37,201 nt of DNA from Ministeria vibrans ATCC 50519. Its lineage: Eukaryota; Protista; Filasterea. Under the pieces are notes generated by a model that saw only the letters and a list, made by a program, of their open reading frames with translations, was not told where the DNA came from and made no database searches. Below are positions 1 to 32,480 of the stretch, piece by piece. The stretch is taken from the NCBI GenBank assembly GCA_943704425.1, contig CALSCP010000465.1, forward strand, positions 1 to 37,201. Direction: 5' to 3'. The first letter of the stretch is position 1, and every line of letters begins with the position of its first letter. A program made the translations under genes and the position numbers.

Positions 1-819
1 GTACACTCTCAGCCAGTCACAGCCACGAGTGAATACATCACTGTGCGATAGCAGCAGGTGGCGCTTAAACGCGTTTCTGTTTGATGCTACATCCTCCTTG
101 CACATCACACAGTTGACGCGGAACACACTCCGAGGATGGCACCCCGAGAAATGATGCCCCACCCACTCAGGCGCAAATCCCAGTCCAGCACACACTCGTC
201 CGTCCACAAGTCGACACCGACACCGCACCTTGCCATTCCCCAGCATCTCAAACACACTCGTGTCCTCCTCATCTTCCTTCTCGCCTCGTGCCATCGCCAA
301 CCAAGTCACAAATCCCATTGGGACTTGTTCCCACTCGCCACGACCAAACACCTTCGCCATTTCTCCCTCAACGTCCTCCTCTTCTCCGTTGCGCTCCAAT
401 GCCGCACGCACCTCTCTCAGGTAGACCGTCTTCCATCCTCCGTCCTCCAACGGACTGCGTTCCATGACGGTGGCTGTGAATGTGTTGCTGTGGTGTGAAG
501 CAACGTGACGTTTAAGGTGACTTGAACCAACAAACGAATTGCAGACGACACAGACAACGCGGTGCTTGCTCATGGGATGGTGCAAGGTAAAGTGTTTCCG
601 CACACCCTCGCCCACAAACCCCTGTGACCGACATGGCTCTCCATCGGCTGTAGGAAAGCGACACACAATCTTTCCGTTGGCGCCCAATGCAAAACAAGCG
701 CCAATCTCACTTGGCGGATCCGTCCGGCATCGTTCGCCCGTCTCCGACATCATCAGCTCCATGTTGGACGCGTACGCACGACCAGCGGCGACCGCGACGC
801 GATCCCACGGTTCGCTCAT
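1..819 (-). CDS. Zinc-finger repeat protein, paralogue of 11619..13001 (5' part only; runs off the window edge)
   Basis: ATG at 819 (minus) gives MSEPWDRVAV...; open frame to position 1; colinear with 11619..12437 with no indels; about 30 aa differences in 273 by manual alignment. Confidence 0.9.
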   Translation of the reverse strand, partial: MSEPWDRVAVAAGRAYASNMELMMSETGERCRTDPPSEIGACFALGANGKIVCRFPTADGEPCRSQGFVGEGVRKHFTLHHPMSKHRVVCVVCNSFVGSSHLKRHVASHHSNTFTATVMERSPLEDGGWKTVYLREVRAALERNGEEEDVEGEMAKVFGRGEWEQVPMGFVTWLAMARGEKEDEEDTSVFEMLGNGKVRCRCRLVDGRVCAGLGFAPEWVGHHFSGCHPRSVFRVNCVMCKEDVASNRNAFKRHLLLSHSDVFTRGCDWLRVY

Positions 820-1017
820 CAGTTGAAAAGAAGTGAGTGAGTGACAACTAGAAAAGTTCTCTAACTTCTGAGTTTAAGTGATAGCAATGATCGTGCAAAG
901 ATCTTCGTTGCACTGCGAGCCCGACATGCCGCACGCGGCGTTGCCGACCCATTTAGCCTTTGTCGGAGCTTGTTTTCCTCCCTGTAAGAATTACTTAGAG
1001 GTCATTAGACTTTCGTT

Positions 1018-2048
1018 TCATTGGTAGGCACTCCACATAGCAATCATGTCAGAATCACAATGGCCCTTCTTTCGCGCCTCAATAAACTTGGCATTGGCAG
1101 CCGATGCGCCCGGAAGTCCCAATTTCAACTACACACGCAATAATGATGATAAAGTTATCGGTCATTAAGTGTTTTTTTTTCCTCTTACGGAATCAGCCAG
1201 CGCAATGGCCAACCGCATATCCTTTTGCATATGTTTCAGAGGGAAATTCGCGTCAAATGTGCCCTTTGCAATCGCCTTTCCCTAAAAAGAGAGCAGTTCT
1301 AAACACACACTCACAATAACAACTACAACTACAACAAACTAGATTTACCTTTCCTGTGAAAAGAGGACTGTTCAACGCTCCTTGAGAAAACACCTACAAA
1401 ACGTCATAACAGAAAAAAAAAACATTAGAAAACAATAATAGTACTAATTCTTTTGATCTCACCTCATTTGTGAGTTCAGTGGAGAAGCCGGACGCATTGG
1501 CAAGTGAGAGACCTTCACAAAGTGCCTGGACACACGTGCCCATAGTCATGTTCACCACAAGCTATAGAGATACACAGTTAGTCAATCAAACCTCAAAACT
1601 GTTTCAAGTTCTAACCTTCATTTTCGCACCGGCTCCCACTGTCTCAGCCAGAGTGAACGTTTTCTTGCCCATCGCATCAAATGCGGGTTGGGCTTCCACA
1701 AGAAGAGCAGAATCGCCTGCGGCCAGAATGACCAGGGTGCCTTGCTCGGCGGGTCCCTTGCTGCCTGAGACGGGTGCTTCCGCTGCACGGCCGCCTTTGG
1801 CAATGATCGCTTCTGAGATCTTCTGGGCCGTCTCTGGATCGACAGTGGACTAGACATGGGTGTAAAAGTGAAGCAAAAAGTGAGAGAGAGAGAGGAGGGG
1901 GAGAAAGAGAGAGAGAGAGGAAGGGGAGAAAGAGAGAGAGAGGAGGGGGAGAAAGAGAGAGAGAGAGGAAGGGGAGAAAGAGAGAGAGAGAGGAGGGGGA
2001 GAAAGAGAGAGAGAGAGGAGGGGGAGAAAGAGAGAGAGAGAGGAGGGG

Positions 2049-2142
<94 letters not shown>

Positions 2143-2966
2143 NNNNNNNNNNNNNNNNNNNNNNNNNNNNNNNNNNNNNNNNNNNNNNNNNNNNNNNNNN
2201 NNNNNNNNNNNNNNNNNNNNNNNNNNNNNNNNNNNNNNNNNNNNNNNNNNNNNNNNNNNNNNGAGAGAAACAAACAAAGTGATAGAGAGAGAAACAAACA
2301 AAGTGATAGAGAGAGAAACAAACAAAGTGATAGAGAGAGAAACAAACAAAGTGATAGAGAGAGAAACAAACAAAGTGATAGAGAGAGAAACAAACAAAGT
2401 GATAGAGAGAGAAACAAACAAAGTGATAGAGAGAGAAACAAACAAAGTGATAGAGAGAGAAACAAACAAAGTGATAGAGAGAGAAACAAACAATGAGTGA
2501 TCAGTCTGGTCAGAAGAGAAGTCTCTTCTCGTACCATATCAACAAAGCCGCGCTTCTCGCCGATGCCGCTCAGCACCCCGTTAGGTTCGCTGAAGACAAG
2601 ATCAAGGGCGGCGGCAGGGTCGCTCACACATGCAAACTGAGGAATGTGAGAAACGAACGCACAAACGCACAAAAAAGCACTGACAGTCCATTTCATACCG
2701 TAATGGCACACGAACGGGCCACGTCGGCGGGCGTAGCGGCCACCTTGGCCCCCAACGCTGCCAGGGGAGCACACTTGTCGGCCGATCGGTTCCAGACGGT
2801 GACCTTAAAGTCACAAGAGCGAAAACATTATTATTAATTATTCATATTATTATCATTATTATATGTAATAGCGATAAGTTTTCAGTACCTGAAGTCCCGC
2901 CTTGATCATGTTGGTGGCCATGGCCTTACCCATGATGCCAAGGCCAAGGAATCCGTAGGTCGTCAT
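1018..2966 (-). CDS. NAD(P)-dependent beta-hydroxyacid dehydrogenase (glyoxylate/succinic semialdehyde reductase GLYR-like; 3-hydroxyisobutyrate dehydrogenase family), 8 exons
   Basis: Spliced exons 2966-2889, 2803-2699, 2636-2535, 1849-1616, 1561-1463, 1393-1349, 1281-1189, 1128-1018. Motifs YGFLGLGIMG (Rossmann), VWNRS, FVDMSTVD, EAPVSGSKGPAEQG, GAKMKLVVN (catalytic Lys), FPLKHMQKDMRLA. Confidence 0.92.
1880..2142. repeat. Purine-rich minisatellite grading into a (GA)n microsatellite, intronic, ending at an assembly gap
   Basis: Repeated gagagagaggagggggagaaa units followed by a pure (GA)n run. Confidence 0.95.
2143..2262. other. Assembly gap (N run)
   Basis: Run of n characters. Confidence 1.
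2263..2492. repeat. 24-bp tandem minisatellite (GAGAGAGAAACAAACAAAGTGATA, about 9.5 copies), intronic
   Basis: Perfect tandem units; produces spurious (RETNKVIE)n and (LFVSLSIT)n ORFs. Confidence 0.95.
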
Positions 2967-3232
2967 TAGGAAGAAGAAGAGCGAAAAAAGTGATAGTGAA
3001 AGTTAGTGAATAAGTGATTAGTTAGGTGATTTATTTCCCAATTTATTATCAATCACAAAATAATACAATGAGTCAGAAACAATCATCATAATAAATATAT
3101 CTTGTCAATTGCATGGCGCTCAAACTTCTCATAAAAATTAAGGCTTGAAAAGAGAACTGAGATGAAACCAGTAACCAGAGACGTAATCACAAATTCACAA
3201 TGTAGATAGAGTCACTTGATTACACATTCTTT

Positions 3233-4599
3233 TCAATCATTGCAGCGCGTACACAGTTTGCCTCCAACACGACACTCGGCGGCCTGTTGCGCCACCAAGA
3301 GGGAACGCAAGGGCGCAGCAGACACATATCCTTCGAGCACATGCACAAACTGAGTGCGGAGATGACTGACATCCGCTAGGACCGACACGGGACAGAGGTC
3401 CGCTGAGGTGCGTGCAGACGACGCGGCCAAGGCCAGAAGAAGCTGGTGGACAGTCGCAGTAGAGATTGGTAGTGCCTCTGCCTCTGTTGTGGAAATGGTG
3501 GTCTCGAGGCCCAGAGAGTGTGCGAGTGGTGCCAACGCCTGGGGGATAGGATTGCTGTCACCACTTGTGTAAGCGCTGATGAGTCGATGGGCGTTTGAAG
3601 GGAACAGCGCAAGTATAGAGCGCAGTTGCTCAAGTGCACTGGGGTTCTCTTCTTCATTGTCGTCCCTAGTATGTGTCTTGCGTATCGACTCAATGATCTC
3701 GGGCGCAGTAAGCTTCTCAAGCACCCCAAGTGCCTCGTCATGGAGAAACGACGCTGTGTAGTGCACTGGTGCGTGTTGGTGGAGTGGCGACGAAACGGTC
3801 GGGCGCGACAGTAGCAAGTAGCCGCGCGGCTGCGCTGTCTCAGTGTCGTTGTAGTCGCGCATCGCCTTCCAGACTGTCTCCAGTGGCGCCCAGTGAGGCG
3901 GTAACTTGAATCTATAACATGGGTGAGAGTGAGCTCTTTCAAACTTTGCTCTCTGTTGACCTTGCGACGTCGAGGATGAGAACCATGTCGCGTCCGGCGT
4001 GATACCCGCCAATAGGAGAGAAATGCCCGTCGCCTGTTTGCCCGAGTGCCTTTCGTGAGTAGGAAACAATCATTTTGGTCTCGTCATTGCGACTGCACTC
4101 CACGACGTCTCGTCTGAACTGCGCACACGAACTGGACAACACACATTCCCGTCAAACGCACGTTTCATCCGCCCCACGCCACAGTACCTATTCACTGCAT
4201 CATGCTGCACGGCTTGGGCGCCGTTGCAGCGTGCCAGACAGGCGACTTTGGAGAGAATAATTCCTTTGGAGCGGATTGTGTCGACGCGCTCACAACAGTC
4301 CAATAAGTACTCGTCAAACCAGCGCCACACCTACGCTGTAATAAGCCCCTGCGGCGTCCGCATGCGCAACGTACCCCTTTCCACTGCCGCCCCGGGTCGA
4401 TGTGCAGCGCGTTGAGGACCATGGAGAGCGATGCGAGCCCACAGAAGGACGGCTCGACCTGCGTTGTAAAGTGCGCCGACAGTTCAAAGAAACCCTCAGC
4501 CGTGCCGTCCGCAAGAGCCTCCCGGAAGATCGTGCGCCCTTCCTGCGATGAAAATTCAATCGATGGAAGCGGCAGGGGCCGTCGATAGAACGTCTTCAT
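3233..4599 (-). CDS. PCS: Phytochelatin synthase (glutathione gamma-glutamylcysteinyltransferase)
   Basis: [32 protein letters not shown] (catalytic Cys), [33 protein letters not shown] (His), LILDVAR (Asp), PPHW. Several short introns. An extra 5' exon near 4680-4800 is possible. Confidence 0.95.
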
Positions 4600-4840
4600 C
4601 GCCAGCACTGCAACAGAATGAGACAAAAAAGAATTAGATCAGTCTATTCAACTTTCACCACTTTTGTAATTTGTTACTGGTTCACAGTTTTTCTGCTGTT
4701 TTTCTTTGCGACGTCTTTCGTAGTCTGTGTCTCTGACTTGCTGCTTCTTGTGTCTCCTTTGTCCATTTAGTCGCCTTCTTTTCATTCGTCTCTTCATCAA
4801 TCATAATTATTATTGTTTATTCATTTGATACGTTTGTGTT

Positions 4841-5301
4841 ATGTCTTCTCTCATCGCTTCGAGAGTCGCCAATTTTCGACCGTCTGTCTTTGCACTGTAC
4901 ACGGGTCTTGCAGCCAAGGCAAATGCTGTTAATTTGGGACAGGGATTTCCCGATTTTAACGTAACTCCGTTTCCATATGAGACAAAATCCTTTTCTCCGT
5001 TGTGCCCTTCTCACTTGCGCTCCTGTAGCCGCCCGCCTTTGCCAGGCAGGCAGCGATCGATGCGTTCAGCGGATCGTACGGAAACCATCAGTACGCACGT
5101 ATGATGGGCCTGCCCTACCTGGTGGAGACGCTGGCACAGCACTACACACATCGCAACCAATTCCAGCAGACCCTCAGCGCCATGGAGAACATCTGCGTCA
5201 CGACTGGCGCCACCGAGGCTGGGTTTGCGTCGGTACAGGTACGGGCTGCCCGTCGGCCTTCCGCCGTGTGTGCTTTATGTGCTCTTGTGAACCTCAGTCA
5301 C

Positions 5302-5334
<33 letters not shown>

Positions 5335-6815
5335 CCATAGGCGATTGTCAATCCCGGCGACAAGGTGGTCCTTTTTGAGCCCTTCTACGACGCCTACCCC
5401 GCCTGGACACACATGGCAGGTGCGACGCCCTTGTACGTGCCTCTAGAGCCGCACACAATCAACGGCAACAATAGCGATAACAACGCACAAAGCGACGACG
5501 ACAACCACGAACGGTCGTCGGACGACTTTACATACGACCGTACGGCCTTTGAAGCGGCCATGAGCGACCCAGCCACGCGCCTGGTCATTCTCAACAACCC
5601 CCACAACCCCCTGGGCAAAGTATGGCGCCGCAGCGAACTCGCTCACATCGCAGAGACCGCTCAGCGTCACAATGTGGCCATTCTGAGCGACGAAGTCTAC
5701 GAAAAACTCATTTTTGAAGAGGAAGCACCAAACAGTCATATTAGCATCGCATCGCTCTCACAAGACGCATTTGATCGCACTCTGACCATTGGGTATCGAT
5801 TCTCACACAAGCAGCGTCAAGAGATTCAACTTCTTTGTATTACATTGCATTAGGAGTGCGGGTAAAACGTTCAGCGCGACGGGTTGGAAGGTCGGTTGGG
5901 CCATCGGTTCGGCTCAAATGATCAGTGCACTTTCAAGTACCCTAAAAAAACAGAAGAAATCAATTTTTGTCTTCATCCTAATCATTTTGTTTGCTCACTT
6001 TTACAGTGATTCATCAATGGATTCCGTTTTGTGTTTCTTCCGGACTTCAACGAGTAATTGATCATCGAGTTTTTCTTAATAATAATTATTATTATTACTA
6101 TACTATTTCTTTTTATTTCTGTGTTGTAGGCAACTGCAAAATCAATTGAACTGTCGGAAACAAATGGGTATTTTGATGAACTGCGCGCGACGATGCGAAC
6201 CCGGCGCGACCTGCTGATGGGAGGACTCACTGCAGCTCATCTGACTCCCTTTAAACCTCACGCTGGGTATTTTGTAATGGCTCAAACCCATTCGCTCGAT
6301 TCCCAAATCGACTCGTTTCAATCAGGTGTCCATTGGTTGTCTTAATTGTTGCATTTCATGAATAGCTTCACTTTTTCATTGCTTCTATTTTAATTGTTGA
6401 ATAGCATCACTGTTTTGTCTTTTATTTCCTTTTTTTTCTTTTCATTGGCTCTGTATTCTCGTCTCTTCTTCTTATATATATTATATCAACACAAATATAT
6501 TTTAATAATAAAATAAATATCATCTTGTTTTTCTTAGACGATAATCTGCTACGCGACGAAAAGGTGTGTCGCTATCTGACCGAAACAGTGCGAGTGGGGC
6601 CCATTCCTCCTTCTCCCTTTTATAGGTACGTTGCATGTGGTGTGTGTGTGTGTGTTGCGATCAGTTTAATTTTATTTATACTTTTTTGTCTTGTTTATTA
6701 TAGTGACCCGCATAAGCATTTAGCGTCGCATTTTGCTCGATTTGCATTTTGCAAGTCGGAGGAATCGATTGTTGAAGCTTCAAAACGACTCTCAGAGTCC
6801 CTCTCACACAAATAA
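4841..6815 (+). CDS. Kynurenine/glutamine aminotransferase (class I/II PLP-dependent, KYAT/CCBL-like), multi-exon
   Basis: AVNLGQGFPDF, VTTGATE, FEPFYDAY, ILNNPHNPLGKV, LSDEVYE, SAGKTFSATGWKVGW (PLP-Lys), RFAFCK. Confidence 0.93.
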
Positions 6816-6852
6816 AAACAAAACGAAAAAAAATGTAATTCTTTCGTCTCAT

Positions 6853-7317
6853 TCAAATAGCAATGGGAAAACGATTTGTTTTGACGCGTAAGATTCGAGT
6901 GTGAGCGGCAATGTAAAGAAATCCATCGCCACCCAACACCACGTTGCCCACTCGCCCACCTGTCACTATGCCCAACACTTGACGGGCACAGCCGGGAGAA
7001 GAAGGATCCGTATGACAGTCCGTGTGCTCTGCTTCAGATCGACGTTGAGTCGTTTGGTTTTTGTTGGTCATTGTGATGAGGTAGACTCCAGAGGGTCCTG
7101 TGGTCCAAATATCCCCTGTTTCATCCACAGTTAGCCCATCACACGCACCAGGTCCAGTCCATCCCACTATAATGGCAATAAAAATTGAATAATATTAAAA
7201 ACAATTAATAATAATTATTATTATTATTATTGTTATAATTAATACCAATCTCGATTAATCTCATTTTCACACACAATGACTCACTCCATCTCACTCATTT
7301 ATCCCTCAGCCACACAC

Positions 7318-7348
<31 letters not shown>

Positions 7349-8388
7349 CACACACACACTCAAATGTATTGTAAATTTCTTCTTCCTACGTGTTTGGGCG
7401 CTGGCAATGAGTCTCCCTTCCGACTCGATAGGTCGCTTAGCACTGTCCAAAGGAAACTCCCACACCCCATGTCGAGTCGTGTCCCGCGTGTCGCTGTTGC
7501 TCACGTACATTCGTGTCCCGTCTGGTGAAAATCCAATTCCGTTTGGCCGTGATATATTCCGCAATAAAAGCTCCTAACATCGTAACATTAATATTTTTTT
7601 TCTTCTCTCTTATTAATATTAATTTCTGTTACTGGTTCTCCACAGGGAACACCAAAGACGTGATTGAGCGGCAGACGGTAGACACCGTTGTAAGGGACCT
7701 GGCGAGAAGGATGTGTGTCGAGTGCCTCGGGTGAGTCGTGTGCGGTCTGACGCAGACCGTACGGAGGGTCCGTGAAGTACAGGTGGTTGTGAGCCAGGGC
7801 GAGGTCGTTGGGCGAGTTGTAACGATGTGAGAGGCTGGGGCCATAAGAAGTGCACGAGAGCCAGTTGGGCCAGGAGGAGTGAATGCGCACCGTCACCGAC
7901 ACGCGACGCCGTCCATGCTCACACGAGAAGAGTGTGTCCAGCAAGGGCGAGTACAGCAGCCCGTTGCTCCCAGGCTCGCGCGGCGACACGCCGTTGTCGA
8001 ATGTTTGGCCACTGCGACCACGCACAAGCTCCAGCCGACCCGCTGCAGTCCAGCGCCACAGCTTGTTGTCCACCACATCCGAAAAAAACAAGTCTCCCCC
8101 GTCGTGCGCGGTCCACGTGACGCCCTCGGCCCATTCAAGCCCCTCAGCAAGCACTTCCACGCGTCCTCCGTCAACCAACACCGCTTGCCAGTCGCCACGC
8201 AGCTCCACTTGGGCCGTGGGTGCCGTCGAAGGAGCGTAGCTAAACACCCTGCTTCCCGGGCCCTCCAACCCCGCCACGCCCAGCCACGCCGGCGGCGGAA
8301 GGCCAACCAGTGCGCCAATTAGGTCAAAGTAATACCACACAAGGACGCCCAGCACAGCCACAGAGACGCATGTGACGAGTTTGTTCAT
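6853..8388 (-). CDS. SMP-30/gluconolactonase/LRE-family beta-propeller protein with an N-terminal signal anchor
   Basis: WAEGVTW, LFFSDV, GSNGL, CEHGRRRVS, YNSPNDL, LYFTDPPYG, RPNGIGFSPDG..MYVSNSD, DGLTVDETGDIW; hydrophobic N-terminus MNKLVTCVSVAVLGVLVWYYF. Confidence 0.9.
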
Positions 8389-8510
8389 TGAAAAGTGAAA
8401 GAGAAAACAGTGATTGAACTTCAAAAGTTCACTCTTGGGGATTGGGGAATGTGATCTCTCTGACTCAAATTTATATTCATTTTTAAATCAGGTGATACGC
8501 GGTCGGCATC

Positions 8511-10251
8511 ATGATCCAGATTCAGCTCGTTGGAATCCTCGTCATCATCGGCATCTTCAAGCTGGTTGAGAAGAAGGCAGCCATGCGCGGGTGCAACCGC
8601 GCTCCCCTTCCCCGTACGCCGACGCCCCTGGCACACACTTGCGTCCCAATATGCAAACGTGTTGGTGTTGGTGGAATGTGAATGTGACGTGATTCTCTGC
8701 TGTTTTTGCAGCGTATCTCGACAAAGCACTTCGACTTGTCTTTCTGGGGTTTCTCGTGGGCCCTTCGTCGCTTTGGATCGACCTCAACCTGCTTCCCTTT
8801 CCTGTCTTGACTCCCTTACTGATGGTACGAGCAAACGCCGCGCTGATCGGAGCTCTTTCTGACGAGTGTGACTCTCTCATTGTGAATTCACACGTGAAAT
8901 TCGGAAATGCGACATCTCATCCGCTCTCACACTTCTGCGCAGTTGTACGCCATTCCTTACAGTGATCTGACGGAGCAACGTGGCGGTCGAAAGAACCTTG
9001 TGGTCCGCAAGTACGGCAAAAGTGTGTGTGTGTGTATGTATGGATGTGTGCACGTATGGATGTGTGTGTGTGTGTGACTGTGTGTGTGTGTGTGTGCGTG
9101 TGTGTGTGCGTGTGTGTGTGCTCAGTGTCATGTGCATATATAGACTGTCACTGTGGCGCTGGTTCTACCGCTACTTCGATTTGAAGCTGGAGCGCACTGT
9201 TCCCTTGCCTGCCGATCGTTCATACATTTTCGGCGCCCACCCACACTCTATTCTCCCCTTTGGCTCTCAAATCGCGTTGGGCGCTGATCTTGAAGGTACA
9301 ACACACACGTCTCTGTTTTTGTTGTTTGTGTATGGGTGTGTAATGTGCAAGAGTCGTTTGTATACAGGTGGATTCAGCGAGCTCTTTCCCGGCATCCAAT
9401 TTCGCGTTCTGGCCGCCACCTTTTGCTTCTACGTGCCCTTTTACCGCGACCTCCTCATGTTCGGCGGTGTCGTCGATGCGGCCCGCTACAGCGCCAACTA
9501 CATCCTCTCGAACGGCTACTCGCTCGCACTGGTCCCCGGGGGCGCCACTGAGGCTCTCCACTGTCATCCCGATTACGATGTCGTGTACATCCGTAAGCGC
9601 AGGGGCTTTGTCCGTCTTGCTCTTGTACGTAGCTGTCATTCCCATTCCATTTTTCTATCGTGTTGTTTATATCCATGCAATCCGCTCCACAACACATCAC
9701 ATCATCACTTACTCTTATCCATGGTCAAGCTCTACCTCTATCCCTAACCCTAACCCGAATGTAAACCTAATCTTAATGCCTTGCTACTTCACTAGGAACA
9801 CGGTGCGTCTCTAGTCCCCGTCTTCTCCTTCAATGAGAACAACACCTACTCTCAATTGGCCGTCGACTCCTCTTTTGTCAAATCCCTCAAGAAAAAATTC
9901 CAATCGCTGTTCGGTAAACACGAAAAGAAAAAAAATCACACACACTTGTCACACTAAAACACCCCTTTTTATATAATTATAGGAATTTCTCTACCGCTCA
10001 TTACCAATATCTTCCCCAAACGCACTGCAATTACAGTTCTTGTCGGTGCTCCCGTCCATTGCCCAAAAATCGAAAATCCCTCAAACGAACAGGTAGCAAA
10101 AATCCATAATTATAATTTGCTTAAACTGATTCATTTCTTTTAGATTGATTCGTATCTTGAACAGTATATTGACTCTCTTGAGACTCTCTATAACGAAAAT
10201 CGCGAAAAATATAATAACCCAAAAACCAAACCAAAACTTCAGATTCTTTGA
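8511..10251 (+). CDS. Diacylglycerol/monoacylglycerol acyltransferase (DGAT2/MOGAT family), multi-exon
   Basis: YIFGAHPHSILPFG, FYVPFYRDLL, LVPGGATEAL, RKRRGFVRLAL, HGASLVPVFSFNEN, VGAPV, YIDSLETLYNEN. The start and the first intron are less certain. Confidence 0.9.
9742..9776 (+). repeat. Short interstitial telomere-like (CCCTAA)n, intronic
   Basis: ccctaaccctaacccgaatgtaaacctaatc inside a DGAT2 intron. Confidence 0.6.
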
Positions 10252-10334
10252 AAGAAAAATACACTATCATCTCTTTTTTGTACACACTCGAATACGTTAC
10301 GACGCAATAAAAAAAGTTACAGTCCGATGAATAA

Positions 10335-11181
10335 TCACTTTTGGAAACTAGAAAAGAACAAAGCGAGAATAAGTAGCAATATATAAAGGACTTATAATAA
10401 CTATCATTGTGCCTGAGTACTTATTGGGATAGATTAAAGCGCCGTTTTGGTCACAATTCAGGCGAAAATGACGTAAGACGCTGCGACATCGATCGAGCTC
10501 ACTTCAAAAAAAAAAAGGAGTCAGTAAATCATTAAGACAAAAAGATGATCGTTTTGAAAAACTTGTTCATCAGTAAAAATACATAATTATAATGTATAGT
10601 TATTACTCGTCGGGTGCGCAAACTTTATCGCGATAGTAGCCAGCAGTGAAGAAAAAGGAGAGTGCTATTGCGCCACTTAAGAGCACATAATTGTCCATAA
10701 TCCCAACCTGAAAGACACGAAACAAGCGTTGGTTGAGACGGCTAAAGCGCAATTTGTCCTGTTACGCACCTGACGAACCATTGAATTCCAGAAGCCAATA
10801 ATGTTCCATATGATTAATACAATGAGAACCGCTACAAAAAGCCAAAAAAAAAAGCACAATGTGCAAAATAGGGTTAGGGTTAGGGTTAGGATTAGGGTTG
10901 CGCTGTACTCAGATATTTTCGCCGGAGCATCTTCAAGAAGGCAATGTCGCGTTGAAAGTGGTGTTGAAAGGTGGCGAGATCTAAAGAAAAGGAGAAGGGA
11001 GAAAGAAAAAAAAAAGAAGAAGAAAAAAAAATGAGGTGTGAAGCAGAGCCATAGGCAAAAGGAGCGGACCGTGTCGTTGCGTCTCAAGGAAAAGATTCGA
11101 CTGACGGTCTGTGTCCTCGTCTGGCGTTGTAAAGGGCGACGGCGTCCGTCTCCGTGTGACTGGGCCGTCATGGTGCGTCAT
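10335..11181 (-). CDS. CNEP1R1: Nuclear envelope phosphatase regulatory subunit (CNEP1R1/TMEM188/Spo7-like), about 6 small exons; not represented as a spliced gene in the ORF track
   Basis: The spliced product ...HDLATFQHHFQRDIAFLKMLRRKYL-TM1-...-TM2-FFTAGYYRDKVCAPDDELDRCRSVLRHFRLNCDQNGALIYP matches the CNEP1R1 pattern DL.AF....FF.G...V.AP.....RCR.VL..+...CD..G.LI..P. The last exon boundary is uncertain. Confidence 0.8.
10868..10899. repeat. Interstitial telomere-like (TTAGGG) x5, intronic
   Basis: tagggttagggttagggttaggattagggt inside a CNEP1R1 intron. Confidence 0.85.
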
Positions 11182-11618
11182 TCGTGCGGTGCTGGCAAAG
11201 CGACAGCGGAATGAGCGACACAGAAAAAAGACAGAGAAAACACAAAAGAGAGAGAGAGAGAGAGAGTGTGTGTGTGTGTGTGTGTGTGCTCAACGGGTCA
11301 GCTGGCCCCTGACGCGTCAGGATCCTTCGTCGACAGACTGGATCGGCTGAGTCGACGACACAGCAGTGCTGCTGTGCGTGACTGCAGCGTCCAGACGTCT
11401 TGGGAAAAGGAACAGTGCGAGAGTGTCACAAAGATGTGTTACGACTCGCCAAAGTCCCTTTCGAGCGTCGCTATCATCATCCCCAAAGCACCGTACAGCA
11501 ATACATCGCCTCTCCCAACATTGAAAAATACGTACAGGGACCCAAGAAGCGCAGCGCGTTGAGTGAGTGGAAAGAAAAGTAATAAAAATATTAAATTATA
11601 TTCAACTTTATTGAACTC

Positions 11619-13001
11619 ATGAGCGAACCGTGGGATCGCGTCGCGGTCGCCGCTGGTCGTGCGTACGCGTCCAACATGGAGCTGATGATGTCGGAGACGG
11701 GCGAACGATGCCGGACGGATCCGCCAAGTGAGATTGGCGCTTGTTTTGCATTGGGCGCCAACGGAAAGATTGTGTGTCGCTTTCCTACAGCCGATGGAGA
11801 GCCATGTCGGTCGAAGGGGTTTGTGGGCGAGGGTGTGCGGGATCATTTTATCATGTGCCATTGCACGAGCAAGCACCGCGTTGTCTGTGTCGTCTGCAAT
11901 TCGTTTGTTGGTGTGAGCAACCTCAAACGTCACGTTGCTTCACACCACAGCAACACATTCACAGCCACCGTCATGGAACGCAGTCCGTTGGAGGACGGAG
12001 GATGGAAGACGGTCTACCTGCGGGAGGTGCGTGCGGCATTGGAGCGCGACGGAGAAGAGGAGGACGTTGAGGGAGAAGTGGCGAAGGTGTTTGATCGTGG
12101 CGAGTTCGAGCGAGTCCCAATGGGATTTGTGACTTGGTTGGCGATGGCACGAGGCGAGAAGGAGGATGAGGAAGACACGAGTGTGTTTGAGATGCTGGGG
12201 AATGGCAAGGTGCGGTGTCGGTGTCGACTTGTGAACGGACGAGTGTGTGCTGGACTGGGATTTGCGCCTGAGGGGGTTGCGCAGCATTTCTCAAACTCCC
12301 ATCCTCGGAGTGTGTTCCGCGTCAACTGTGTGGTGTGCAAGGAGGATGCGGCGCCACACGGAAGCACATTGAAGCGCCACCTGCTGCAATCGCACAGTGA
12401 TGTATTCACTCGTGACTGTGACTGGCTGAGAGTGTACTCTTCACTTGTGCGCAGTGAGCTGGAGGAGCGCAATGCGAGTGAGTCTGTGATTGTGCGTGAG
12501 CTGCAGTTGTTGCGTGAGTGTGAGCGAGTGCCGTCGTCGTTTGGTGATTGGCTGTCGCGTGCGCAGAAGGAGAGGGAAGAGGGGAGTGGGTGTAGTGCGG
12601 TGGATCTCGACGCGTCGTTTGAGCGACTGGCCAATGGTCGGTTTAAATGTCGAATGGTGCGACCGGCGACGCGACAAGAGTGTGACTTTGCACCATTCAC
12701 AAAGGGGAATGTGAGTACTCATTTCAGTCGGCATCATGTGCTGAGTGTGTATCGCACTCGATGTGCCATCTGCTCGCAATCCGTGTCCGAGGCGGGCAGT
12801 CTGCGCAAACACCTGCGCTGCCGTCACTCTGCGTTGTTCACTTCCGCTGTGTTGGCGTCGACCTGGAAGAGTGTATACAGTGCGTGTGTGCAGAGTGCAA
12901 TGTTGCGAGAGGGAAAGAGTGAGAGTGCGATTGAGAGGGAACTGTCGATTTTGTATGAGTTTGGCAAAGTGCCGGCGAACTTCCACAAATGGGCCAAGTA
13001 A
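11619..13001 (+). CDS. Uncharacterised intronless protein with three ~130-150-aa modules, each with two C2H2/BED-like zinc fingers and a helical W..VY...VP..F..W segment
   Basis: 460-aa ORF. Each module has F..L.NG+..C-x9/10-C-x12-HF...H followed by C..C-x11/13-H-x4-H (LKRH, LKRH, LRKH). Confidence 0.88.
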   Translation: MSEPWDRVAVAAGRAYASNMELMMSETGERCRTDPPSEIGACFALGANGKIVCRFPTADGEPCRSKGFVGEGVRDHFIMCHCTSKHRVVCVVCNSFVGVSNLKRHVASHHSNTFTATVMERSPLEDGGWKTVYLREVRAALERDGEEEDVEGEVAKVFDRGEFERVPMGFVTWLAMARGEKEDEEDTSVFEMLGNGKVRCRCRLVNGRVCAGLGFAPEGVAQHFSNSHPRSVFRVNCVVCKEDAAPHGSTLKRHLLQSHSDVFTRDCDWLRVYSSLVRSELEERNASESVIVRELQLLRECERVPSSFGDWLSRAQKEREEGSGCSAVDLDASFERLANGRFKCRMVRPATRQECDFAPFTKGNVSTHFSRHHVLSVYRTRCAICSQSVSEAGSLRKHLRCRHSALFTSAVLASTWKSVYSACVQSAMLREGKSESAIERELSILYEFGKVPANFHKWAK

Positions 13002-13167
13002 AAAATCAACAAAAATAGTCTCTTTCATGTATTAATCACGTATTCCAAAGTTTGAATACGCCCTAATGCTTTGTAATAATATGAAAGCGAAAAAGCGTGA
13101 TTTATTTCATTTTTCACACATCAACTCCTCTCTCCACACACACACACACACACATACACATTGTCGA

Positions 13168-14969
13168 TCACTCGCGTCGCACTGACAGGTTAATGTGTCT
13201 CTGTGCATCGGCGACTTCACCTAGATGGTTTTCGGTGCGCGTGAGCCGTTCTTCCATGAGCGAGACTGTGCGCGTGAGCAGTTTGAGCTGACTGAGAATC
13301 TGTGCCAGAGCCGTCGCTTGTTCTGCGCCCGACGGAATTGCATCGACAGGCTCAGTGTGAAACGCGCTACCACTGCTGCTGTCACTACTACTAGTCGTTG
13401 TCGTAGTAGTCGTAGTGGCAGCAGCAGCAGCAGCAGCAGAAATGGCAGTGTGTGAGCCCTCGTGGCGTTGGTCAGTGCCAAAGTGCACTTTCTGTGCGAC
13501 AGTCGTCACGCGAGCCCCATCAAAGTCATCGCCTCTCCTTCCTCCGCTCCCAATCCCCCTCCTTCCTTCTGATCCTGATGCTGTTCCTAATGCTGCTCCT
13601 GATGCTGATCCCTTTGCGCGTCTCGGGCGCACCTCGGCCGACTCCACTGGGCCTGCCAGTGCCTCGTCAAAGTTGCTCTTCCACACCATCACCAGTGTGT
13701 CGTTGGCACCCGTCGCAAAGTAATCGCCACGCGGTGACCATGCCGCCGCTGTGCACGGGCCAGTGTGGCCGTGCAGCGTAAAGAACAGGTGACCCTCGCG
13801 CAGATCCCAGATGCGCAGTGTGCCGTCGGACGAGGCGCTGAGGAGGAAGTCGCCTGATGCCGGATGAAACGCAACCGAGTTGACTGCATCACCATGTGCC
13901 GGGTAGTGCTGCAACAAACGCATTGTGCGCACATCCCACACGTTGATGGTACGGTCTGTGCTACCTGACGCAACGCAAGTGCCGTCCGGATGGAACGCGA
14001 CCGTGTTCACCATGCCAACGTGCTCATGGAACACGTGAATGCACCGCTGCGTCGCCACGTCCCACAGGCGCACTGTTTTGTCGTCGCTCCCACTCACTGC
14101 CAGACGACCATCCGGCGAGAACACCGCACATCGCACCCAGTTAGTGTGGCCCACAAGCGAGCAGATGAACCGTCGTCGCTGCACGTCCCAAACCTGAGTC
14201 AAAAAAAAAAAAAAAGAACATGTTTCAACGATGCACTCCCAGCCTTCTCTTCGTACCTTGACTGTTTTGTCGTCTGACGCCGTGATAAGACGACGTCCGT
14301 CTGAGGAAAAGGCGACACTTCGAACTGACGCTGAGTGTGCGCGTATCACCGTGGACTGCCCTCGTACCGTTGGCACCCACAGCCTCACACAGCAGTCACT
14401 ACACACACCACAGAGAGACACACACAAAGACACACAAAGACATACAAAGACATATAAAGACATACAAAGACATACAAAGACACACATCAATACACACACA
14501 AATACACCCAATTAGCATTCAGCTCGTGACGCTTCGCCGTGGGCGTACCGACTCGCACTGGCAACAAGATGGCCTGAAGGCGAAAAGCACACACAAGTGA
14601 CAATGTCACTGTGTCCCACATAGCGAAAGGCTCGAAGGTTCTCTTTGAAATTCCACACCATCACTGTGTGGTCTGTAGAGCCACTCGCCACCTGCTTGAG
14701 CGTGGGCGAGAAGCTACACAAACGCCACAGTCAGTGATTTTTCGTTTTTTTCGTTTTTTTTTTTTTTGAATATTTGAAATTCAACATTGACAGGTCGTTG
14801 CAACAAAACACTGATTCATGCATGCCAGATGTCAATTCACGGCCATCCAAACATGCTCCGAAGAGGAAGGGACTCAACGCGCCGTCATTCAAATTCGCAA
14901 AGGTCACCTTGTACTCGTCACGGCGTTGCCATGGCCGCGAAAGGTTCTTTCCAACGTTGGGTCGTCCAT
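13168..14969 (-). CDS. POC1: Centriolar WD40 protein POC1
   Basis: [59 protein letters not shown], and a C-terminal Poc1 coiled coil [25 protein letters not shown]. Confidence 0.95.
14416..14486. repeat. 10-bp tandem repeat (GACATACAAA) in a POC1 intron
   Basis: About 7 imperfect copies. Confidence 0.85.
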
Positions 14970-15176
14970 CACACAGTATATTGACAGTTACAGTGGTTCA
15001 CCAGCAGAAAGAGTGACTGAGTGAGAAAAATGAAGATGTAAAATTAAAAATAAATTGTATTATTGTAAATGTATATCATCAGATTTGAGTTGGTCGCTTC
15101 CATCTTCCATTTGAAAAGAAATAACCTTAAAAGTTCAAATAAACTAAAATTGTTTTATCCCTTCTCTTCTTTTGTC

Positions 15177-18100
15177 ATGCACCGCGTGCTGGTCATACTC
15201 AGTCTCATCGCGGCTGCAGCTTCGGTCACAAACGCCTATGGTAAGATTCATTCCGTTTTGGAAATAGAGTACAAATTTTTTTAAAAAATATATATATATA
15301 AAAAAAACACTGTCCTGTTTGCTAACCACGCTTTGTCACGGCGTTGCAGTGTGCCACCAGTCGTACACGTTTGGAACGGGTATCGCCGAGACCACCGTGG
15401 CGTCTGAAATTGGGGGCTGTACGAACATCACTGGAAGCATTGCGCTGACGTCAACCAACCTGTTGACGCTTTCGGTCTTTGACAGTGTTGTCGCCATTGG
15501 CGGCTCGCTCACCGTCTCCTCCAACGCCCTTCTGACCAGCATTGGCATGCCGTCGCTGGCCCACCTCGGCGGCGCCCTCGTCATCGACGCCAACAGCCAA
15601 CTGCAGACCATTCACATGGACGCTCTCGTTGGCGTCCAAGGAAGCGTCTCTGTCGCCAACAACGCCGCCCTCGCCTCCATTGCCTGGACTCACCTTGTCA
15701 AGGTATCCCAAATCACAACCGCTTCGTCATCTCTGGAAACGAGAGAGAGAGTGAGTGTGTGTGTGTGAGAGAGAGAGAGTCAGTGCGAGAAAAATTTCAA
15801 CAAATTCAAAATAATATTAACAGACGGACAGACAGACAACACACTACAATATAAAAATAAATAAAAAAATATATTGTCATGTTAATGTTCTCTTTTATAG
15901 ATTGAAGGCGCAGATTTGTCGATCCGTCAAAACGCCCAACTTATCACTGTGGGGGCTTCCAACAGCGTCTTCAGTTCGCTGGGTCAGCTCTCGTCGGGCC
16001 CCGGCACCTACGTCGACCTTGAAATATCCGACAACTCCGCACTGAGCGCCTTGGGTCTCTTTAACCAGAGTACTCCCATTGCATTTCCCTCCAGTCGTCC
16101 CCTTCGTCTCCGCCTGCAAAACTATAATGTTGCACCAAACATGAAGGCGTTCTCGGGACTCTCGGGTGCACTTCACAGTCTCGAAATCATCAAGTGTAAC
16201 GCTCTCCAAACTCTCGACGGCCTGAACAGTTTCACCGAGGTGATCGTGGGTATCCATGTGGAAGACAATCCAGTGCTTACCAACGTCGACGGTCTCAACT
16301 TTATTGCCGTCACCAACGCGTCCGCCCTTGAGTACATCACATTCAAGAAATTGCCCTTGCTTGTCGACATTGACGGTCTCAACAACTGGCCCAACACCCC
16401 CACGTCACATCCCCAATTTACCCTTGAACTCTCCGACTTGGACATTCTTACCTCCATCGATCCTTTGTCTTTCCTCGACAATGCCGTTCTTTTCAGCCTG
16501 CGTCTCATCAACCTGCCTCTCCTAAACAAACTAGAGGGCCTCGAGGGTCTCACCCACATTATCGCCGAATTCTCTCTCGACAACGTCGACACCATCGACA
16601 CTGTCAACGACCTGGATACCGATATCACTCTCGGTACATCGTGCGTCGTGACCATTGCCAACAACGAAGTTCTGCGCAACATGCGCCGCTTTGATAGCGT
16701 CCTCACCATTTCCACGCTGCTCATCAGCGATAATCCTGCTCTGCTTCGCATTCCAGGCTTTGAAAGCCTCCAAACAATCACTTCTTCTTTCATCTTCAAT
16801 AACAACGACGAGCAGGACTCTTTTAGCGACTCGCTTGGCTTTCAGGCGCTCACCACCGTTGGCGGCTCTTTCACCATCAGCAACAATGCCAAAATTGAAC
16901 ACCTCGATGCATTTGCATCGCTCACCACGATCGGTGGTTCCCTCTCCATCAAGGCCAACGCGCTGCTTGATGACATATCAGGCCTTGCTGCAGTCACCTC
17001 CGTCGGTGGTCTCCTCGAGTTGTACAATCTCCCCGCCCTCGAAGAGCTCGACGGTGCCTTTGCCAACCTCGTCTCCTGCACAAAACTGCGCATCAATACC
17101 TGCAATTTGCTCACCAACTTTGACTCGTTCATGAGTGGCATCTCGGTCGCCGTTTCGCTCTCGGGCTTTCTTGAAATGATGGCTCTGCCTCAACTCACGT
17201 CGCTCAACGGTCTCCGCTGGATCAAGTCTGCTTCCTCCGTGACCCTCACCTCCCTCGGTTCCTCGACCGCATTTGCCTTTGGCTCACAGACCCTTGAACA
17301 TCTCGAGACTGTCTCCGGCTCCTTCATCGTTCAGAACACGGGTCTCACAGACATCGACTCGCTCGGTGCACTCGCCAGCTCCGGCCTTACCGTCTCTGGT
17401 GACTTTCGTCTTGTCTCCAACCCTTTCTTCACCAGCACCACTGGTCTGTCCGCCCTTTCATCCGTCGGCGGTGAGCTCCTCATCGATGGAAACGACGCAC
17501 TCGGTAAAAAAAAATCAATTTTAATCATATTATTATTTTTATTTTTTCTTACTCCTTATTTTTCTTTTTTTTTTTTTACCTCGCCCTTTTAGTCGACTTT
17601 GATGATATTACGAACCTCTCATTGACCGTGGCCGAACTGGGTGTGGAAGACAATGCCTTACTGAAAAACCTAAACGGACTCAGTGGCATCAATGTGAACA
17701 CCAAAATTGATATCCGCCGCAACGACGCACTCGTTTCGATTGCGGGCCTCAGCAGCGTGTCGGGCACGCTCTTTTCTATTTACATTGACAAAAACGACGC
17801 ACTGCTCTCCCTCGAGGGTCTCCAGGGCGTATCGGGCATTAGTTCGGCGGTCACCATCACAGACAATGCCCAGCTGGTACATGGCCTTGCGAGCAGCACC
17901 TTCACCAACACTGGCGAGTGCGTGTTCTCCCATCTCAACGAGGCGCTGTCGAGCTCAATCAACATTGACATTGAGGACAATGCCAACCTCGACTCTATCG
18001 ATTGCTTTCACCGCGTCAAGAATGCCCAAACGGTCACCGTCAAGAACAACAATGCCGTCACCAGCCTGAACATGTTCACCATTAGCAGCGAAAGCTCCAG

Positions 18101-30246: not shown

Positions 30247-32480
30247 ATGGCCGAAGAAGCGCCTCAAGAGATTGCCATGGTGCCAATGGTACGAATGGCG
30301 ACGCGCACGCTGTCCCAGCTAACGCCCACGGGCCGTAGGAAACGCTGCAACGGCGTCGGTCGTACGAGGACGCTCTCGCGCACGCAGACAAGCCGGAGGG
30401 GGCCGCATCGGATGCGCTGGCCGTCACACAAGCCATCAGTGCCGCCCGCGCCCTCTCGCTCTCCACCGCTGCTAAGGTATACGCTCTTTTAGCTTTTTTT
30501 TGTTGTCTTCGTTTTTTAAATTTCTCTCTCTCACTCTCTCACTCTCTCACTCTCACTCACACACATTTTTTTTTTTCGCTCTCTGTGCATTAAACCGAAA
30601 CCGACGTAGGCGATGGACAAGCCAGTTGTGATCACGTTCAACAAGGTCTCGTACAGTGTGGACATGCCAGTGAAGCGCATGTCGGCCATGCAAAAGCTGC
30701 GTGGCTTCTCACTGCGCGGCTTCCCCAAGCCCGAAGTCAAGCGCAAGTTTCTCCTGACTGACGTGAGCGGCACTATGCTGCCTGGCACTATGACTTCACT
30801 TATGGGTCCATCTGTAAGCAGAAGATTGGTTTGTGTGTGTGTGTGTGTGTGTGTGTGAATGTGTGTGTGTGTGAATGTGTCCTTGGTTAGCTTATGGGTA
30901 ATGACTGTTGTGTTGTGTTTTTATAATATTATTGTATATAACCATGTGTGTTGTTTGCAGGGAGCGGGAAAGTCAACACTGTTGGATGTGTTGTCAGGCC
31001 GCAAAAACACAGGATACATTGACGGCGACATTCTCTTCAATGGTCATCCCATGACGGCGGACATCAAGCGAAACCTTGGTACTCTACAATATCCACACAA
31101 AACAGTCCAAGCTAGTATTGAGTACTTTTTCGTTGCAGGTTATGTTGAACAGACCAACACACTGATTGAGACACTGACAGTGCGTCAGCTGCTGACGTAC
31201 ACAGCGCGGTTGCGACTTCCGGACTGGTGGACTGACGAACGTCGAAAACAGCGTGTAAGCACAAAAAAAAGCAATATTATACTGATAGATAATGAGTGGT
31301 TGGTGATTAATTGTCTGTGTGTTGCTGTTGGTTTTTGTTTTAGGTGAATGATGTGATTGAGGAACTGGGACTGGCGAGTTGCGCTGATACAATGATTGGC
31401 GGAGAGACACTGCGGGGAGTGAGTGGAGGACAGGCGAAACGGGTGAACATCGGAGTGGAGCTCATTACCAATCCCAGAGTGCTCTTTCTCGATGAACCTA
31501 CAACGTACCCAATCTCAATTTATGTGTGTGTATATATATGTATGTGTCTTGTGCAAATGATTGCCTGAGTGTGTTTTGTTTTTCTTTCTGTCCGCTGTCT
31601 GTGAATGGTGGATTGATTTGTTACTGTTTGAACAGGGGACTGGATGCAGCAACGTCGTTTGAAGTGATGTCGGTGATGCGTCACATTGCAGACGGAGGAC
31701 GCAGTATCATTGCCACAATCCGTATAATATTATCCATCTTACCATGTTGCACTAGGATGATATCAATTTAACAATCGTTTTTTTTTTGTAGATCAACCTA
31801 GCACGGATGTTTTTTTGCTTTTCAATCGGTATGCACTCGCAGATTGACACTATGTCTCTGTCACTCTTGCATTACAACTGACTTTCCCATTGACGCTCTC
31901 GCACTCCCTTACTCAATTGCCTCATACCATTCCTCTATTTCTCTTGTTTAGCCTTCTTCTTCTTGTGAGTGGCGAGGTCACTTACTTGGGCCCAATCAAT
32001 TTGGCTGTCTCTCACTTTACAAACTTTGGCTTTGTCTATGATTCCAAGGAAAATCCCGCTGATTTCATTGGTACCACACACCTCATTATTTCATCTCTGG
32101 ATTCTTAATCATTACGATTAAACTCTTTTTGTGTGTGTCAATTTACACAAGCCACTGACATTCTCTCTCATCTCTTTTTTGTGTGCTTATCAGTTGCTGT
32201 GACTGGACAGGACAATGATGACGAAAACAAACAGATTGCCGGTCCAAAAGTGCACAAAGTAAGTCCTTTACGTCTCTTTGTCGTTGCCTTACCTTTCGAT
32301 TTCACCCATTTTCTCATTCTTCTCTCTCCCTCTATCTCTCTCTATCACTTTGTTTCTCTCTCTCTCTCTCTCTCTATCACTTTGTTTCTCTCTATCACTT
32401 TGTTTCTCTCTATCACTTTGTTTCTCTCTCTCTCTATCACTTTGTTTCTCTCTCTCTCTTGTCTCTCTCTCTCTATCACT

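Follow-up and report, generated by a model that had tools for sequence, protein, structure and literature searches.

Contig CALSCP010000465.1 (C465) of the filasterean protist Ministeria vibrans ATCC 50519 carries two inverted copies of a Cys2His2 (C2H2) zinc-finger gene, here called copies A and B, which are separated by 10.8 kb. The window that we analyzed was this entire contig (37,201 nucleotides, nt), and hence copy A, which runs off the contig edge, is seen only in part. The initial annotation of the sequence described the two as twin genes. We found instead that they are two members of a family of about 35–40 loci, many of which are pseudogenes. Our reading, to which we give a probability of roughly 0.6, is that this is a lineage-restricted and dispersed family in which the scaffold is kept by selection, the finger helices diversify, segments are exchanged ectopically between copies, and the result is a repertoire of putative binders. 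The diversification and the shuffling are supported by the analyses below; the recognition of nucleic acid sequence is the function that we infer from them.

The Two Copies and Their Family

A repeat search of the window recovered the two genes as inverted-repeat arms (1–836 and 11602–12437) of 93% identity. When they were compared codon by codon, positions 819 to 1 of the minus strand and 11619–12437 of the plus strand aligned without a gap over 819 nt and differed at 52 of them (93.65% identity). These changes produced 30 amino acid (aa) differences among 273 residues, and 11 further codons had a synonymous change alone. The first 194 nt were identical, the first mismatch being nt 195, and none of the 30 differences fell on a Cys or His zinc ligand, all 16 of which were retained. 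In these respects the initial annotation, which had described a gapless pair with an identical stretch of about 190 nt, complete ligands and four pairs of divergent peptides (all of them present in A and B), was accurate. It had also claimed that the aa differences gather in and around the finger helices. Because its windows had been drawn after the differences were seen, the helix windows were redefined by a motif rule set beforehand: every window opens seven residues ahead of a finger's first His and closes two past its last, and the ligands themselves are not counted. The rule-based windows comprised 51 of the 273 codons, and 19 of the 30 aa differences lay in them (Fisher p=7.6e-9); when the windows were cut down to the seven residues that precede the first His, the count was 11/28 (Fisher p=2.8e-5), so that the clustering withstood a formal test. 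The rates of nonsynonymous (dN) and synonymous (dS) substitution were 0.25 and 0.19 inside the windows and 0.024 and 0.063 outside them. Synonymous changes were therefore denser in the same patches, as had been noticed earlier, but this excess is borderline, since only about 6 and 9 changes lie behind the two values of dS.

The similarity of A and B stops abruptly at the gene. Between copies of the family, homology reaches no further than the ATG on one side and the stop codon on the other, A and B with their dS of 0.06–0.09 being no exception; this is expected of ectopic conversion among old dispersed paralogues and not of a recent segmental duplication. A recent inverted segmental duplication was accordingly rejected as the origin of the pair: their flanks are unrelated beyond 17 nt, and the full-length copies share no flanks. 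The missing 3' part of copy A was not found; several contigs begin at about codon 267–273, and none of them could be assigned to A.

Compared with itself, protein B shows matches shifted by about 145 aa (33–37% identity), which divide it into three modules. Each module comprises a first, wide-knuckle finger (C-x9-10-C-x12-H-x4-H), a second finger (C-x2-C-x11-13-H-x4-H) and about 60 helical residues, and the helical tail of every module ends in a V-P-x2-F-x2-W motif. The residues invariant across modules are F3, C13, C24, F29, F38, H42, S45, C51, C54, H67, Y89, P121, and W127 (module 3 numbering). Compared with the classical C2H2 spacing (C-x2-4-C-x12-H-x3-5-H), the second finger fits, while the C-x9-10-C of the first lies outside the range. 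The second His ligand of finger 2 is H110 and not H109. The only Pfam model that passed its cut-off on B was zf-Di19 (PF05605; 31.5 bits vs. 27.5), which spans the module 3 finger pair and has three matching stretches in all; zf-C2H2_4 stayed below (23.3 vs. 27). The BED finger (PF02892) had no match in B; its score was 20.9 bits (cut-off 20.6) in the paralogue L039, where no single stretch passed alone, and 17 bits in the others. A profile of the module aligned in register with a finger pair of CTCF (E=0.001). No KRAB, SCAN, BTB, or ZAD domain was detected by Pfam in B or in seven paralogues, and no PR/SET domain in B. The finger pairs sit in modules of 130–145 aa with about 60–70 aa of helices between the pairs, and thus do not form a tandem array. 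AlphaFold2 gave a mean predicted local distance difference test (pLDDT) score of 79 for the whole protein, with the N-terminal 37 residues and the linkers disordered. In the predicted models each finger appears as short strands followed by a helix bearing both His residues (pLDDT 80–97), that is, a beta-beta-alpha arrangement. No solved structure resembled the module in searches with Foldseek (whole protein and module 3, E>2) and VIA-align (module 3, Z<4).

The search of the organism's own assembly (29.7 Mb in 2860 contigs) with protein B returned 87 genomic matches, which were grouped into the 35–40 loci. Nine copies are near full length. Complete open reading frames (ORFs) in the assembly are limited to B, L002, and L005, and a fourth intact one, L031 (478 aa), was found on a metagenome scaffold. 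Runs of N interrupt L004, L007, L014, and L037, at least 13 copies (A included) stop at contig ends, and the remaining copies have stop codons or frameshifts. Several isolated old fragments cover the 3' end alone. Two copies seemed to have open frames of 760 and 913 aa; these were produced by N runs and are not fusions. The copy number was investigated further with the contigs of four public sequencing runs, which are pieces of k-mer length. Depth over the ORF of B was 20–50 times that of its flanks in independent runs of 2011, 2022, and 2025, for example 400–2400 against 34 in the 2011 run and 4000–16000 against 225 in the 2022 run. Therefore, the high copy number is a property of the organism and not of the assembly. 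Both junctions between the ORF of B and its flanks were recovered in contigs of independent runs, and at least 20 distinct and unique upstream flanks were attached to the same start codon.

The flanks of the nine full-length copies had nothing in common. The sole upstream element common to many copies was a loose TTTCAAYT-like motif 15 nt before the ATG (L001, L004, L010, L012, L033, L040, L051, and others), which may act as an initiator or promoter element or mark the border of conversion tracts. (ATT)n or (AAT)n microsatellites adjoin L005, L006, L018, L019, L025, and L038, upstream or downstream.

The same genome also contains distant paralogues with two or three modules (29–57% identity). 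Four of them, L027 (C2206:82335–83894), L039 (C2859), L044 (C1414), and L045 (C524), are 29–47% identical and may be older, slower-evolving members of the family. In L027 (655 aa), module 1 is followed by a long insert containing acidic runs and a basic stretch rich in K and R that resembles a nuclear localization signal. Elsewhere, relatives were scarce. A word-indexed search of 5.8 billion proteins gave three matches, and a profile search of 1.84 billion representatives gave six family members, the remaining matches being generic fingers. Feature searches of the atlas returned only unnamed or generic C2H2 clusters. Apart from a few metagenome scaffolds, with intact relatives among them, the family was seen solely in this organism.

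The initial annotation had proposed a conserved scaffold with hypervariable finger-helix residues from two copies, and this holds for about 25. When 25 copies were aligned on the coordinates of B, the scaffold was near-invariant, and the hypervariable columns lay in and around the six finger helices. Each helix occurred in 17–23 distinct versions among 20–26 copies, as compared with 5 for control stretches such as V-P-M-G-F...A-R-G-E. Zinc ligands deviated from B in 3.5% of the cells of the alignment, as against 19% at other sites, and most of these losses were in copies bearing stop codons. L031 and L006 (C473) have both lost the first His in the two fingers of module 2 (H223D and H254R). Since L031 is nevertheless an intact ORF, the disabling of two fingers may not prevent a copy from being maintained.

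Probable Selection on the Helices and Exchange between Copies

The ratio of dN to dS (omega) was estimated for separate partitions. In pairwise Nei-Gojobori comparisons the scaffold had an omega of 0.35 (95% interval 0.30–0.42) at a dS of about 0.3, the predefined helix partition 0.8–1.0, and the canonical helix positions -1, +2, +3, and +6 reached 1.3–1.5 (95% interval 0.8–2.9). A scaffold omega this low at such a dS indicates that purifying selection, besides conversion, keeps the scaffold uniform. For the tandem pair L010 and L018 on C1339, which has a scaffold dS of only 0.03, the helices differed by eight nonsynonymous changes and one synonymous change.

Site-class likelihoods, a check that had been proposed together with the initial annotation, were calculated with our own implementation of GY94 (F3x4 codon frequencies, one IQ-TREE tree per segment, tree scale free; the nine-segment fit, with segments of 50 codons, was run with one shared tree scale). 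Model M2a was favored over M1a in three data sets. For 24 sequences and three module trees the likelihood ratio test (LRT) statistic was 219.6, with 9.7% of sites in a class with an omega2 of 3.6; for the same number of sequences and nine segment trees it was 104.4 (omega2 2.9, 9.0% of sites), and for the 13 copies without stop codons and six trees it was 68.5 (omega2 3.6, 9.2% of sites). Because recombination can inflate this test, null data were simulated under M1a, with an independent genealogy drawn for each block of 10 codons, and put through the analysis used for the real data. The six replicates gave LRT values of 0–7.1, far from the 68.5–219.6 observed.

The sites with a posterior above 0.95 (fast sites) were 66, 75, 78–80, 99–101, 161, 163, 165, 213, 222, 247, 249, 250, 309, 357, 371, 391, 394, 397, 405, 409, and 454. 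The helix partition defined beforehand makes up 17% of the protein and contained 16 of these 25 sites. Those of the CxxC fingers were found at helix positions -1, +1, +2, +3, and +6. In complexes of the Zif268 type, the base-contacting helix positions are among -1, +1, +2, +3, and +6. A small additional cluster of fast sites lies directly before V-P-x2-F-x2-W in every module. The hot spots were reproducible: sites predicted from two modules and mapped to the third had a dN 2.5–3.6 times that of other sites. On these codon comparisons, a subset of the helix residues is likely under diversifying selection, and neutral drift at the fast helix residues is the main remaining alternative.

Exchange between the copies was supported by several lines of evidence. 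A statistic of the four-gamete or pairwise homoplasy index (PHI) type, computed from 192 informative sites, was below all 1000 permutations of site order (p<=0.001). Nearest-neighbor profiles were mosaic, and the copies are built of segments that are 98–100% identical to other paralogues. In copy A, codons 46–105 (module 1 helices) were 98–100% identical to the tandem copies on C1339, and codons 211–270 (module 2 helices) were 100% identical to copies on C905. Copy B was 100% identical to L010 over codons 106–210, to L018 over 226–255, and to L017/L033 over 346–435. Moreover, the metagenome copy L031 unites helices known from three distinct copies in the genome. The view that gene conversion homogenises the scaffold, which had been advanced with the initial annotation, thus stands as far as exchange between copies is concerned, but conversion does not act alone, because purifying selection also maintains the scaffold.

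Some copies form local clusters: the tandem pair on C1339 (7287–8664 and 11629–13005) is separated by 4.3 kb, and C905 has no fewer than three loci (at about 20, 48, and 96 kb). The clustered copies of these two contigs are the nearest donors of segments in A and B.

The family is transcribed. Sequencing run X17 has a spliced contig of the minus-strand gene next to B and is thus at least partly complementary DNA (cDNA). It covers the ORF of B at a depth of 22–360 and its flanks at 0–7, and one X17 contig links 135 nt of the unique upstream flank of L002 to the ORF. L002 is therefore probably transcribed itself.

Competing Explanations and Known Systems

Based on these results, we propose the following course of evolution. 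The 35–40 dispersed loci evolve by gain and loss of copies. Purifying selection retains the scaffold and the zinc ligands, and a few finger-helix residues, with some at the end of each helical tail, are likely driven to change. Ectopic gene conversion or recombination swaps segments, whole helix "cassettes" included, among the dispersed copies, and consequently nearly every copy has its own combination of six helices. The fingers may serve in recognition, with DNA or RNA sequence as the most likely target, and the conserved N-terminal peptide and scaffold may provide a common effector function, so that the family could act as a repertoire of binders with differing specificities. A more specific version, in which this protist repertoire of sequence-specific zinc-finger binders evolved independently of animals and is directed against rapidly changing targets (transposons, viruses, or satellite DNA, for example), is tentative, and we would sooner doubt it than rely on it. 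Self/non-self recognition, which had been suggested with the initial annotation beside the surveillance of transposons or viruses, is likewise a conjectural role.

Several observations weigh against the proposed repertoire. Tree-free pairwise omega is about 1 and not above it, both in the helices and, given the wide interval, at the canonical positions. At the cross-module predicted sites the conservative tree-free estimate was 0.91 (0.64–1.32), which means that neutrality there is compatible with some measures and that not all of them exceed 1. In the first fingers, those with the wide knuckle, the fast sites are at +6 and, for the most part, in the stretch from one His to the other, where no canonical contact position lies. 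The modules are predicted as compact globules and not as beads on a string, and hence the classical wrapping of fingers along the major groove of DNA is not assured. With three complete intact ORFs in the assembly and many copies with stop codons or frameshifts, much of the family may be dead, and the X17 transcripts could be attributed to the family and to L002, but none to B itself. Finally, the assembly is fragmented (at least 13 contig ends and several N gaps inside copies), the contigs covering B are too short to prove its internal linkage, and some of the mosaics could be assembly chimeras.

If the omega values near 1 are taken at face value (0.8–1.0 for the helix partition, and the cross-module estimate given above), the variable helix residues might be an unconstrained surface that drifts almost neutrally, on fingers that are structural or bind proteins, while conversion and purifying selection keep the rest. 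The many pseudogene copies would agree with such relaxed constraint. Nevertheless, M1a already contains a neutral class, yet M2a is better by an LRT of 68–220 against a null maximum of about 7. Furthermore, the helix partition averages about 1 despite its invariant Phe, Leu, Lys, and Arg positions, so that some helix sites must exceed 1, and the eight-to-one ratio in the helices of L010 and L018, at so small a scaffold divergence, points in the same direction. We consider relaxed constraint unlikely. Genes without introns in an intron-rich genome, dispersed in dozens of copies that are often truncated or interrupted by stops, with isolated old 3'-end fragments and with similarity confined to the ORF, would also be expected if the ORF were itself selfish or mobile, either as retrocopies or as the passenger of an unrecognised element, its copy number reflecting its own spread and neutral decay. 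This is improbable, given that the scaffold is under purifying selection and that the fast sites are specific ones, found again in each of the three modules. In addition, there were no common terminal repeats, poly(A) tails, or 3' untranslated region (UTR), target-site duplications not having been searched systematically, and Pfam searches of the protein and of its distant paralogues gave no domain of a reverse transcriptase, transposase, or integrase. The identification of the gene as a transposon or retrocopy was rejected for want of termini, a poly(A) tail, or an enzyme domain.

It is very improbable that the family is largely an artefact of assembly, its patchwork having been created by chimeric contigs in which alleles, or the sequences of a few copies, were collapsed and wrongly joined. 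At least 12 copies besides A do finish at contig ends, N gaps lie within four copies, and short contigs cannot prove linkage within B. Yet the excess depth over the ORF occurs in three independent data sets, each finger has 17–23 helix variants, the start codon is preceded by at least 20 unique flanks, and an intact mosaic copy is present on a metagenome scaffold that was assembled independently. We retain the dispersed family with selected scaffold and diversifying helices as the best explanation.

Fast-evolving zinc-finger families with positively selected recognition residues have been recorded mainly in animals, in which they are tied to the control of transposons and to the positioning of recombination hot spots. 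No comparable case from a unicellular eukaryote was found in the literature that we searched, the coverage of which was incomplete and is not proof of absence. In lineage-specific poly-zinc-finger expansions of animals, positive selection alters the DNA-binding specificity among recent paralogues (Emerson & Thomas 2009, PMC2604467), and such expansions have been linked to transposons (Wells et al. 2023, PMC10547256). The Ministeria family resembles these expansions but belongs outside them, as it has no KRAB-like domain, no tandem array, and a different modular fold. Like the KRAB zinc-finger proteins (KRAB-ZFPs) and similar families, it is large and young, with gain, loss, and many pseudogenes, it joins a conserved non-finger part to C2H2 fingers, and dN/dS is raised in helix residues (here in the CxxC fingers, at -1, +2, +3, and +6); this is a functional resemblance and not membership. 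Unlike them, it has no KRAB, SCAN, BTB, or other known effector domain, its six fingers are arranged in three modules with a helical bundle instead of a tandem array of 28-aa fingers joined by TGEKP-type linkers, its copies are dispersed and not in large clusters, and its host is a protist. With PRDM9 it shares fast-changing recognition residues of the fingers and the recombination-driven reshuffling of finger units. However, it has neither PR/SET nor a minisatellite-like finger array, and the reshuffling is between dispersed paralogues and not between the repeats of one gene. The finger pair of module 3 is like the Di19 double zinc finger, to which it matches above the cut-off, although nothing outside the pair matches plant Di19, and the triple-module layout and helical tail have no counterpart in Pfam or the Protein Data Bank (PDB). 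The likeness to CTCF (PDB 5k5h and others) consists of the finger pair in register and the H-x4-H spacing; it is weak and limited to the fingers, the C-x9-10-C knuckle of the first finger sets the two apart, and no structural match was significant.

If the family is a true equivalent of the animal ones, it would show that the same evolutionary strategy recurs outside animals, and as a small system of six helices without introns it would allow helix sequence to be read out directly against target. Moreover, the mosaic structure is a natural case for the interplay of gene conversion and selection for diversity in a dispersed family.

Features and Neighbors in the Window

The positions of the two copies and of the parts of protein B are collected in table 1.

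Table 1. Features of copies A and B in the window; aa numbers and helix variants refer to protein B and to the copies aligned with it (pTM, predicted template modelling score).
Feature	Position	Strand	Remarks
Copy A, codons 1–273	1..819	-	Truncated by the end of C465; no stop codon; 16 zinc ligands intact
Upstream similarity of A and B, about 17 nt	820..836	-	Loose TTTCAAYT-like motif; flanks unrelated beyond
Copy B, 460 aa and stop codon	11619..13001	+	Intact intronless ORF; zf-Di19 match
N-terminal 38 residues	11619..11732	+	Predicted disordered; first 20 codons near-invariant among copies, dN 0.04
Module 1, aa 40–186	11736..12176	+	C-x9-C-x12-H-x4-H, C-x2-C-x11-H-x4-H, helical tail with acidic linker
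Finger 1 helix patch, aa 69–83	11823..11867	+	Fast sites 75, 78, 79, 80; 19 variants in 21 copies
Finger 2 helix patch, aa 97–111	11907..11951	+	Fast sites 99, 100, 101 (helix +1, +2, +3); 17 variants in 20 copies
Module 2, aa 187–331	12177..12611	+	Layout of module 1; 33–37% identity with modules 1 and 3
Finger 3 helix patch, aa 216–230	12264..12308	+	Fast site 222; 18 variants in 22 copies
Finger 4 helix patch, aa 243–261	12345..12401	+	Fast sites 247, 249, 250 (helix -1, +2, +3); 18 variants in 22 copies
Module 3, aa 332–460	12612..12998	+	Compact when folded alone (pLDDT 95.6, pTM 0.84)
Finger 5 helix patch, aa 361–375	12699..12743	+	Fast site 371; 21 variants in 26 copies
Finger 6 helix patch, aa 387–405	12777..12833	+	Fast sites 391, 394, 397 (helix -1, +3, +6); 23 variants in 26 copies

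Between the two copies there is one assembly gap (2143–2262), which is bordered by a (GA)n tract and a 24-nt minisatellite (2263–2496) and touches neither A nor B. It falls within an intron of a minus-strand gene resembling beta-hydroxyacid dehydrogenases (1616–2966). The NAD_binding_2 profile is colinear across the gap, with profile positions 2–26 at 2862–2966 and 93–157 at 1616–1849. The sequences beside the gap are thus parts of a single gene, with order and strand as expected, which supports the joining of A to the scaffold that carries B. The minisatellite has an inverted counterpart at 32331–32459 (76% similar).

The neighbor of copy B is a minus-strand gene with its ATG at 11171, and TTAGGG repeats of telomere type occur inside this neighboring gene region (10870–10900). 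An X17 contig joins 11191 directly to 11536, and the skipped stretch, with CT...AC ends on the plus strand, corresponds to a GT-AG intron on the minus strand (11192–11535). Because the X17 contigs splice 11536 to 11191, a 5' UTR exon of this neighbor, from 11536 to about 11640, abuts or overlaps the start of B, and the two genes are arranged head to head.

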